A stretch of DNA of 64,000 bases from Octopus sinensis (taxonomy: Eukaryota): NCBI RefSeq assembly GCF_006345805.1, contig NC_043024.1, positions 8,990,001 through 9,054,000 on the forward strand. Direction: 5' to 3'. This document shows positions 32,939 through 38,254 of the stretch, piece by piece. A program made the translations under genes and the position numbers. The notes under the pieces were generated by a model that was given only the letters and a program-made list of their open reading frames with translations, was not told the origin of the DNA and searched no databases. Numbering within the stretch: the first letter of the stretch is position 1; every line of letters begins with the position of its first letter.

Positions 32939-35900
32939 TTATCTTTCATAATGAAAGAAAGCAAAAGACTGGCGTCCTGCAATAATTCCAAAAACCATGA
33001 AAGAATTGTCTGAAATATCAAAACCAAGCACTTGGAAGACTTCGTTATCATCGTCCCTGAGTAATAAGTATTTATGAATATCTTCTGATGTTTGGTGTGG
33101 AATATCTCCAGGTATTTGATAAATATTGTTAAGCCTGTCTGTTACATAAACATAGTCACCAAGTGTGGTTAGACAGGGTCTGTGTTTAAAATTCAGGTAA
33201 TTTGTACATTTTGGCAGGCATATACTATTGACTAACGATTTTTCCCTGTACCACAAGACAACGACATCCTGACTATCATTCTTCCACTTCACAACAACAA
33301 CATCACCACTAGATGTCACTGCTATATCCAACACACCCAATCCTACCTCCTTCCTCATCAGCATCCGCATCCACACACCCACGTCCTCCCACTCCCGCAT
33401 CTTCACCACCTCACTATACATTTCATTCTTACGTTCACACGTCCCATTATCAATATCAATATCAAGTACATCTACATAGACACGGTAACTTTCCCTGCTA
33501 AAAGAAATACCACCACACACCAGTTGATTGTCATTGTATTTACAAATCCTGTTGTAGTATTTCTCAGTGTTGATGGTTTTTAAACGGTAGAGATCCCTGT
33601 TGAAGACCATCAGTCGTTTACGACAGACGACTATGAAACGTTCACCTGTCCACCGACATATATCTAGTGATGGTGGTTGTTTCGATGGTTGTTGTGGCAG
33701 TTGTTTTTGCTGAAGTATGTCACCTGTTGTTGTGCAGATTAATGTAACTGTGTCTCTAAACATGAACACACTGAAATTGTCGTACAACTTAATTAATTTA
33801 CTATCGTTACTGTCATATTTGTAATGATAATCAACAGGTTCTTCCACCGTAGGAATGGAAAGAGGAACCATTGCTGTTCTATATGGCAGTTTCTTCACTG
33901 ATACTTCCTCAATTCCTGACATACTCTCCGCTATGTAATTACCACATCGCACCTTTAATCTACCTTTACTAACTATTTCATTTGATTTACCTTTTCTTCC
34001 TTCTCCATCTCCCCGACTCTGTTCCAGATTATTAATCAACTCATGACTGAATATTTTTTTGTTCATCTGAGATGTAATGAAAGGGAAATGAAGACCAGAA
34101 TCAAGATTTAATAATGACAAAGATTCCAGAACCTTCAGTTGGTCACCATCAATCTTTATGCGATGATATTCAATCAAGTTAATATGTACGCACCAATAAA
34201 TATTTGCCACTGCTCTCCATATTACACCATAAGGTACGTGACTTTGCCAAACTTTATATTTCTCCAGATCTTGTTGCTTCAGTTGAAATATTTCTTGTCG
34301 TTTAGGAATTGTAACCATTATGTCACTTTCTCCTGTAAAACACACACCACCAACTAAACTTCTAACATCTTTGTGACAAAGCATCTGCCCATCTCTATCA
34401 AATATTTTAACAATTCCATTATTGGCTTTCTCACACACGATCGTTTTTCCTTCATCAGAGATATCAATGTCTTTTACTTGAATAGGACATTTGTCTGTTA
34501 GCAAACGAGAAACAGGGAAGATTTCTCGCTTAACTTGAAACAAACCTTCAACATACAATTTATTTATGTTCGAACAGCTTCCAACAAACCTTGGTCCTTT
34601 ACAGTTTATGCTACTGAAATTTACTTCATCTTTATAAATTCTGTCATTCAAAAATCTTCTGCTGTATTCACCAGTTTGTGTGAAACACAAAATGTTATTA
34701 TATTTGTTGTCACCAAAATATCTTTCCCACCGACCATGGACATACAAATAACAGTTATCAGTTGTCATGGTGTTAGAAATACTGGAATAATCCATATAGT
34801 GTCTAACTGAATGTAGATGTTCACCATCAGTGTTGAAGAAAACAAAGTACCTTTTATTGTTGACAATGATGACATCATTAGCATCAGTTATAATATCATG
34901 GACGCTATCTATGTGTCCCTCTAATAATATCCTACCTGCATCCAATTTTTTTATTGTATTCACAGTCAAAAATTCTTCATCAATTTCAATGACATACAAA
35001 GTACCTGCTTCTCCCCGTCTACGACACGCCAGTTGATTGTTTGACAAAGAAGCGATAAATTCATATACATTTTCAGTCTGGTAAATTGTCAACGACAATG
35101 GAAATTCCACTTTTAATGTCAACAGTTGGAATTTAGTCGTAATAATCAGTGTATTTGACTGCCATCGACACATATTTATATCGGACTTAAACTCGGAACT
35201 AACTCCCAACTTGATAAAGTCCAGAAGTTGACCGTCAAATGTCAATATCTTAATGTTTCTATTTTCACTGTCATACACTGCTATCAGGTTATTTTCAGTA
35301 ATAACCAGACAATCAATCCTTACTAATTTTTCATCTCCAAAACCTGGAGGGACAATAACGTGTCTAGCTTTATCAGAAACTGTCATATCCTGTACATATA
35401 ATGTAGAAGACCACATCTCACCGACACATATGTTTCTAGAAAATACATCTAGCAGGTCAATGTACAAGATAAGTTGATTATTCATGATGTGGTCTCTCCC
35501 CACCAAGTTATGGTCATTTATAGCAAGCACACGGTTGTTGCCTATCAGATACACAAACATTTTGTCAATACATCCTCCAGAGAAATTAAGGGAGTGTTTT
35601 ACTCCGGACAGGAAATCCCTGGGGATCATCTTAATACTATTCCTACAACTATGGCCAACACTATCAATAGAAGTGTTGTACTGAAATACTTTATTCCTAG
35701 TAACAATTAATAGATTTAGAGTTTCATTTTCTATTTCTAATGATTTTACTACAAAAGGGATATTAATTCTACGAATCATTTCAACCTGATTATAATTTTT
35801 AATGGCTAAAATATCTAATTGAGATGGTTTATCAGAATAACAAACAATGTGACCTTTACCCAGCTTACACACCTTTACATAAGCGTGACTTAACGATATG

Positions 35901-38254: not shown

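Follow-up and report, generated by a model that had tools for sequence, protein, structure and literature searches.

The window analyzed here, a 64,000-nt stretch of the Octopus sinensis genome (NCBI RefSeq assembly GCF_006345805.1, contig NC_043024.1, positions 8,990,001 to 9,054,000 of the forward strand), contains two inverted copies of a large gene (Table 1). In the right copy, hereafter the window gene, an intact and uninterrupted frame of 1,771 codons runs from ATG to TAA on the minus strand, and this is the sole open reading frame (ORF) of at least 150 amino acids (aa) between 30 and 41 kb. Each of the two window proteins is identical to a RefSeq model, and these models, from the LOC118768318/LOC118768319 cluster, are labelled “uncharacterized protein”; an isoform X2 of the window gene is 10 aa shorter. 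In the annotated relatives from O. vulgaris, O. bimaculoides, and Argonauta hians the gene range equals the length of the coding sequence (CDS), and the CDS of the window gene is therefore taken to be a single exon, as a preliminary description of this DNA had proposed. That description had also called the protein unrecognised; it is not unique, being annotated in RefSeq (as uncharacterized) and belonging to a large octopod family. Structure prediction and profile comparisons support a protein composed almost entirely of tandem six-bladed propeller units of the NHL type.

Table 1. Features of the window. Positions are those of the 64,000-nt stretch; percentages following unit numbers or P0028 are hhalign probabilities.
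Feature	Position	Strand	Description
Left-arm core of inverted duplication	4902..14025	+	Pairs with 41045-31914, 97.9% identity
Left gene copy	7681..13059	+	1792-aa frame, 97% identical
Right gene copy, complete single-exon CDS	32939..38254	-	1771 aa + TAA; exact match to RefSeq Octopus sinensis model
N-terminal region (aa 1-164)	37763..38254	-	Hydrophilic, low-complexity, then probably helical stretch; poorly conserved in paralogues
Propeller unit 1 (aa 165-440)	36935..37762	-	Unit 2, 90.2%; best-scoring part of the first AlphaFold2 model, all-beta
Propeller unit 2 (aa 441-700)	36155..36934	-	Six-bladed NHL-type AlphaFold2 model; Foldseek NHL matches
Propeller unit 3 (aa 701-975)	35330..36154	-	DICRW blade-2 motif; matches to units 2 and 6 and to the P0028 propeller
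Propeller unit 4 (aa 976-1255)	34490..35329	-	Unit 2, 95.5%; unit 6, 95.3%; P0028, 78.9%
Unit 5 (aa 1256-1480)	33815..34489	-	Three homologous leading blades; unit 4, 92.5%; P0028, 92.9%
Unit 6 (aa 1481-1771)	32942..33814	-	Three homologous leading blades (hhalign)
Pyrimidine-rich tract with terminal AG	38255..38275	-	7 nt ahead of ATG; putative splice acceptor of a non-coding 5' exon (sequence only); same in paralogue L020
Mariner-type MITE (miniature inverted-repeat transposable element), ~504 bp	38300..38803	-	46 bp upstream of ATG; terminal inverted repeats and transposase remnant
Sister MITE copies	32049-32549, 7132-7635, 13396-13890		Bracket both gene copies

For the fold assignment, the units were stacked on one another: seven family members contributed 42 unit sequences, a distant single-propeller protein was added, and AlphaFold2 (AF2) was run on this alignment (A5), the query being unit 2 (aa 436-706); A5 replaced an alignment (A4) in which full-length relatives were mixed with single units and the units stayed unstacked. 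The resulting model (predicted local distance difference test, pLDDT, 87.9; predicted template modelling score 0.84) has approximately 24 strands, which form six four-stranded blades and close into a propeller. When it was compared to the PDB with Foldseek, the NHL domains of TRIM71, Thin, Lin41, TRIM2, TRIM3, Mei-P26, and Brat ranked first with template modelling (TM) scores of 0.64-0.70, a range that also included the NHL-derived designer protein Pizza6, and seven-bladed WD40 proteins ranked below them (0.55-0.60). Units 1, 3, and 4 are tied to this closed six-bladed model by profile matches that extend over five to six blades. Searching PDB sequences with the unit profile likewise yielded NHL domains as all of the top nine matches (Brat, TRIM71, TRIM2, TRIM3, and Thin), with weak E-values of 0.017-0.16. 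In BFVD, the fold search retrieved nothing but generic propellers of giant-virus and phage origin. The preliminary description had compared the blades to NHL/TolB-like six-bladed propellers, and the unit 2 model, the PDB profile search, and the matches to the single-propeller protein P0028 (see below) agree with this comparison.

The repeat structure of the protein is visible in its motifs and in profile alignments. The blade-2 motif occurs at aa 236, 489, 754, 1027, 1303, and 1531 and the Y-x-x-I/V motif at aa 528, 792, 1064, 1342, and 1567; all motifs listed earlier are thus present, the previously given positions 1308 and 1536 being those of the left copy. A degenerate version of the blade-2 pattern has five matches in the protein and none of 2000 shuffled sequences reached six or more, which is a loose control because shuffles reaching five matches went uncounted. 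BLASTP of the protein against itself did not find any repeat, so that profiles were needed and the units must be very old. Profiles were derived from an alignment of eight full-length members (the window gene and three of its O. sinensis paralogues, two sequences from O. vulgaris, and one each from O. bimaculoides and Argonauta hians), using the unit boundaries in Table 1 and unit sizes of ~225-290 aa. Seven of the 15 possible unit pairs were matched in register by hhalign with probabilities of 90-95.5% and E-values of 1e-6 to 1e-8: units 2-4 (95.5%, E 1.6e-8, 188 columns), 4-6 (95.3%), 3-6 (94.6%), 2-3 (92.6%, 205 columns), 3-4 (92.6%), 4-5 (92.5%), and 1-2 (90.2%, 178 columns). These matches connect all six units, whose pairwise identities are 10-19%, and indicate that the six-fold period is real but ancient.

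The units are not equivalent, however. Units 1-4 match each other across five to six blades, whereas the matches of units 5 and 6 are confined to the first three blades (approximately the first 100 residues). Six tandem, diverged, in-register units, as proposed in the preliminary description, are thereby confirmed by the profiles, but complete propellers only for units 1-4, and the “about six propellers” are better read, from these alignments, as four complete units followed by two with homologous first three blades. The second half of unit 5 is short, rich in G, R, and K, and has no confident fold assignment; that of unit 6 looks blade-like by eye, without statistical support. Unit 3 contains a loop that accepts insertions in paralogues. 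Among the paralogues and the Argonauta member, L023, L025, and L029 carry long low-complexity inserts in the unit 3 loops (Ser/Gly-rich) and in unit 6, the unit 6 loop insert of Argonauta being a proline/glutamine/tyrosine repeat; from these sequences, the propeller loops evidently tolerate large inserts.

According to Pfam, the protein lacks EGF, LDL, enzyme, and transposon domains. No RING finger was matched at E-values up to 10 and no B-box was found; the first 164 residues contain just two cysteines, and the annotated models begin at the same methionine without an upstream coding exon. The KKKRR stretch, which had been described as resembling a nuclear localization signal, is located at aa 32, but the N-terminal 120 aa including it are unconserved in the paralogues and either evolve at a ratio of non-synonymous to synonymous substitution rates (dN/dS) of ~1 or cannot be aligned, and the motif therefore carries little weight. 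None of the 19-residue windows of the protein resembles a transmembrane segment and no signal peptide was found, so that the earlier statement that RING, B-box, and signal peptide are missing stands. Because of this lack of signal peptide-like or membrane-spanning windows and of the strongly hydrophilic N-terminus (mean Kyte-Doolittle value -1.65), a cytosolic or nuclear location is most likely.

The most distant matches in the profile search are two single-propeller proteins, P0028 and P0029. The N-terminal half of P0028 is coiled-coil-like, as judged by eye, and a RING-finger ORF ends 20 nt upstream of it; because of this combination P0028 is regarded as a TRIM-like gene that was split by a prokaryotic gene caller. 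Its propeller was matched by hhalign to unit 3 (94.6%), unit 5 (92.9%), unit 4 (78.9%, 207 columns), and unit 6 (74.9%), and in a genome search with P0028 the unit 3 stretch was matched at an E-value of 2.3e-6. About ten loci in O. sinensis fit P0028 better than the hexa-propeller genes do. The likeliest origin of these genes, inferred from the sequence relationships, would be a gene of the TRIM-like RING/coiled-coil/propeller type whose single propeller was multiplied by duplication within the gene, with loss of the E3 module. P0028-type invertebrate TRIM-like proteins are the closest outside sequence relatives and have a G-I-C-x-W blade-2 motif in common with the octopus protein, but they possess a single propeller associated with RING, and their N-terminal region has no detectable relation to that of the octopus protein (no similarity was found by hhalign between the latter and the coiled-coil part of P0028).

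Comparison to well-studied systems reveals similarities and differences. The NHL domains of TRIM-NHL proteins (TRIM71/LIN-41, TRIM2, TRIM3, Brat, Mei-P26, and Thin), which are the best structural matches, are likewise six-bladed, comprise ~270 aa, and share the recurring blade motif “hydrophobic strand, D/N-x-N, I-x-I/V-F/Y, x-x-G.” TRIM-NHL proteins, however, have one C-terminal propeller, whereas the octopus protein has six in tandem without RING, B-box, or a detectable coiled coil, stays below the Pfam NHL threshold, and has its own D-I-C-R-W blade-2 and Y-x-x-I/V-C blade-3 motifs. The YWTD proteins of the LDL-receptor family (LRP1, 2, 4, 5, and 6) likewise combine multiple six-bladed propellers, which belong to the same structural superfamily, in a single polypeptide. 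They are either secreted or membrane-bound and carry Cys-rich ligand repeats as well as EGF modules that separate the propellers; in contrast, the propellers of the octopus protein directly abut each other, and signal peptide, transmembrane segment, EGF, and Cys-rich modules are all missing. Finally, octopus protocadherins and C2H2 zinc fingers form large, clustered, cephalopod-expanded families whose coding sequence lies in one large exon. The propeller family resembles them in clustering and in the single large exon but is unrelated in protein fold; the C2H2 expansion in octopus has been treated elsewhere (PMC12513265).

A search of the 2.72-Gb O. sinensis assembly with a 276-aa piece of the protein retrieved at least 169 matches, which correspond to at least ~115 distinct loci. 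Approximately 33 of these have open frames of at least 1,650 aa. The majority map to C30 (15,106,159 bp) or to unplaced scaffolds, and C1, C2, C10, C25, and C27 each carry a single copy; the divergent copies on C1, C2, C10, and C25 were represented in our comparisons by their O. vulgaris and O. bimaculoides orthologues. When 16 paralogue loci were read, four were intact, nine had one or two disruptions, and three were badly decayed. Some scaffold pairs are 99.6-99.8% identical and are probably haplotigs. The family profile had only 28 matches among 1.84 billion representative proteins, two of them the distant single-propeller proteins; all named matches are from O. sinensis, O. vulgaris, O. 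bimaculoides, or Argonauta hians and are designated “uncharacterized” or “hypothetical.” Within this protein library the family is thus, as judged by sequence, restricted to octopods. No published description of it was found in the literature. Similarity between distant paralogues covers no more than the CDS and a short 3' stretch, and close paralogues have flanks of varying length in common (0.6 to >1.9 kb upstream); these variable flank ends argue for segmental duplication and not transposition.

Three further observations concern individual family members. Firstly, a third copy on C28 (G000:C28:8976275-8977099), located 13 kb to the left of the window, is 72% identical and has an open frame of 1524 aa; it and the two window copies make up a small local group, separate from the main clusters on C30. 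Secondly, ~50-130 nt past the stop codon L020, L023, L025, and L026 contain a conserved stretch that looks like the reverse-complemented 3' half of a tRNA (GGGAATCGAACC...) and is followed by TG/TA microsatellites. ARAGORN did not predict a tRNA gene at four paralogue loci, and by sequence the stretch may be a remnant of a short interspersed nuclear element (SINE) carried along with the duplication unit. Thirdly, P0025 and P0047 (Octopus vulgaris CAJ1099278.1 and CAJ1099277.1) are labelled “E3 ubiquitin-protein ligase MIB2-like,” and residues 217-325 of P0025 match the start of unit 1; P0025 may reflect a chimeric gene model or a genuine fusion to an E3 ligase gene.

Two deeply branching, conserved single-copy members, P0006 and P0012 (46 and 30% aligned aa identity to the window gene, respectively), have orthologues in O. 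vulgaris and O. bimaculoides that are 92 and 94% identical, lie in collinear flanks, and evolve at dN/dS ratios of 0.39 and 0.45. The ratio is 0.21-0.32 between deep paralogues, 0.47-0.59 among intact members of the expanded clade, and 0.73-0.92 between very recent copies. A family with syntenic orthologues that is under purifying selection (dN/dS 0.2-0.5) is indicated by these substitution patterns. Moreover, a 5-kb frame that remains open across species at dS values of 0.06-0.10 is unexpected without selection, and we therefore regard the members as conventional genes under selection that undergo birth-and-death turnover. In O. vulgaris, the window gene has an orthologue of 1766 aa with 95% overall identity and no difference at all over aa 241-560 (100%). 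In a sliding-window analysis dN/dS was ~1 in the N-terminal tail and 0.2-0.5 in units 1-3, and it ranged from 0.5 to >1 in places within units 4-6, which suggests that propellers 1-3 are a conserved core and that the C-terminal half is more plastic.

Taken as a whole, we consider it probable that the window gene is an intact member of an octopod-only family and encodes a RING-less tandem-propeller protein that serves as a non-catalytic binding platform. The structural and evolutionary description contained in this reading is held with high confidence: the product would be a cytosolic protein of ~1,800 aa, in which a fast-evolving N-terminal tail of ~160 aa precedes the six NHL-derived units, and the family would have grown by tandem and segmental duplication at the DNA level, mainly on one small chromosome. 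The proposed function in binding and sensing is tentative. NHL propellers in TRIM-NHL proteins are non-catalytic modules that bind RNA or protein, and RNA complexes are present among the Foldseek matches of unit 2. Because six propellers follow each other in a row without any catalytic or signalling domain, a multivalent binding platform with one ligand-binding face per propeller appears most plausible. Propellers 1-3 would form its conserved core and the faster-evolving propellers 4-6 might recognise variable protein or RNA ligands, which would fit the fast turnover and clustering of the genes and would be consistent with functions in intracellular sensing or defence. A bolder version, in which octopods possess a repertoire of intracellular recognition proteins composed of RING-less hexa-propeller sensors or restriction factors whose genes diversify, by birth-and-death, on a small chromosome of their own, seems distinctly unlikely; propellers 4-6 would then be the variable recognition end, in parallel to the TRIM5/PRY-SPRY and NLR expansions elsewhere.

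The family appears to be a further octopus lineage-specific expansion beside protocadherins and C2H2 zinc fingers (at least 115 loci, ~33 of them intact, mostly on the 15-Mb C30). In animals, an E3 ligase module normally accompanies the NHL domain, and an architecture of six directly joined NHL-type propellers without this module seems undescribed. It would also provide a clean case of domain amplification within a gene followed by amplification of the gene itself, with two conserved “founder” genes beside a clade of fast turnover. If the family were tied to infection or to transposon control, it would represent a new class of invertebrate recognition molecule; if no such tie exists, it would be an unusual but structurally ordinary repeat protein.

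Several observations weigh against this interpretation. With regard to the fold, a confident AF2 model was obtained for one unit of six (unit 2). The AF2 model of aa 165-1255 (four units, five paralogues) was poor (pLDDT 38.5) and unusable for fold searches, although it consisted almost wholly of short beta strands. Neither the window protein nor its units matched Pfam NHL (PF01436, gathering threshold 20 bits); the family member P0012 scored 18.5 bits, below the threshold, and the distant relative P0029 21.5 bits, above it. In addition, hhalign detected no similarity between the second halves of units 5 and 6 and any of the half-units. With regard to the gene, the two window copies differ at a dN/dS of 0.84, which gives no support for constraint acting on the window gene after the duplication, although dN is inflated by the misaligned frameshifted tail of the left copy. 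Approximately two thirds of the family loci contain stops or frameshifts, and copy counts are inflated because haplotig-like scaffolds are included. With regard to function, the net charges of the units are near zero and do not support RNA binding (-3 to +6 by sequence, as compared to the basic RNA-binding top face of TRIM-NHL propellers), and the functional proposal is inferred by analogy to NHL domains.

The alternative that survives best accepts the family as real but takes the window locus to be a young duplicate that is decaying or silent, or even to result from head-to-head joining of two haplotypes during assembly. We consider this unlikely. The duplication arms reach from ~1 to 16780 and from 45200 to 27430 (~17 kb each) and are separated by a spacer of (TA)n arrays (17010-18241 and 20534-23373) and (TATC)n arrays, which flank a 100-N assembly gap (24759-24858) that would be compatible with a mis-join. 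Furthermore, the left copy lacks 1 bp in a G run after position 12892, so that its frame shifts 44 codons before the normal stop, its last 44 residues are replaced, and it reads on into a MITE; this frameshift and the high dN/dS between the copies are as expected for decay. However, the frameshift may stem from a sequencing error in the homopolymer, the right copy has no disruption and ends in the C-terminus typical for the family, and its close O. vulgaris orthologue speaks against decay as well. The arms are also more divergent (97.9% identity) than the haplotig-like scaffold pairs mentioned above, and a true duplication, yielding genuine paralogues, is therefore more likely than an assembly fold-back. 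A further MITE end starts 20 nt past each normal stop codon; because this stop-abutting MITE is common to both copies, the duplication is younger than the MITE insertion.

It is highly unlikely that the ORF is the coding gene or cargo of a transposable or selfish element whose copies reflect transposition. Such an origin would account for more than 100 mostly broken copies, for the near-neutral dN/dS between recent copies, and for the repeat-rich surroundings, in which 504-bp direct repeats flank the window copies. These repeats were tried as long terminal repeats (LTRs) and rejected, since they bear the terminal inverted repeats and the transposase C-terminus remnant of mariner MITEs, are present at the window copies only, and are missing from the paralogues. 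Moreover, Pfam detected no reverse transcriptase, integrase, transposase, or helicase domain; what paralogues share beyond the CDS has no common ends, as described above; the copies are concentrated on one chromosome instead of being dispersed; and P0006 and P0012 are syntenic across species under purifying selection. Lacking catalytic domains and shared element termini, the gene does not correspond to a known transposon or viral protein, a possibility that the preliminary description had also considered. Least credible is the proposal that the propellers are TolB-like six-bladed enzymes of the lactonase, SGL, strictosidine-synthase, or PAL type, which belong to the same fold class and to which the weak Pfam matches of the distant relative P0029 (Vgb_lyase, Lactonase, and SGL) could point, because no family member matches these Pfam families, non-catalytic TRIM-NHL domains rank first in both the structural and the sequence comparisons, and by inspection no invariant His/Asp/Glu metal-site pattern recurs across the stacked units.

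The remainder of the window is rich in repeats. Upstream of the right copy are a tandem array with a period of 185 bp (40678-41780, six copies), whose unit resembles a tRNA-derived SINE, and a second one with a period of 437 bp (41973-43205, 2.8 copies). Fragments of a non-LTR retrotransposon on the minus strand at 48902-50480 and 56031-57008 encode an endonuclease (Exo_endo_phos_2), a reverse transcriptase (RVT_1, E 5e-21), and a PHD-like finger, with ~97% identity between stretches within 48.9-49.8 kb and 56.0-57.9 kb. A 302-bp satellite occupies 60707-63407 (8.9 copies, 95% identity), and shorter arrays of it are located at 632-1221 and 44329-44611, one in each duplication arm.

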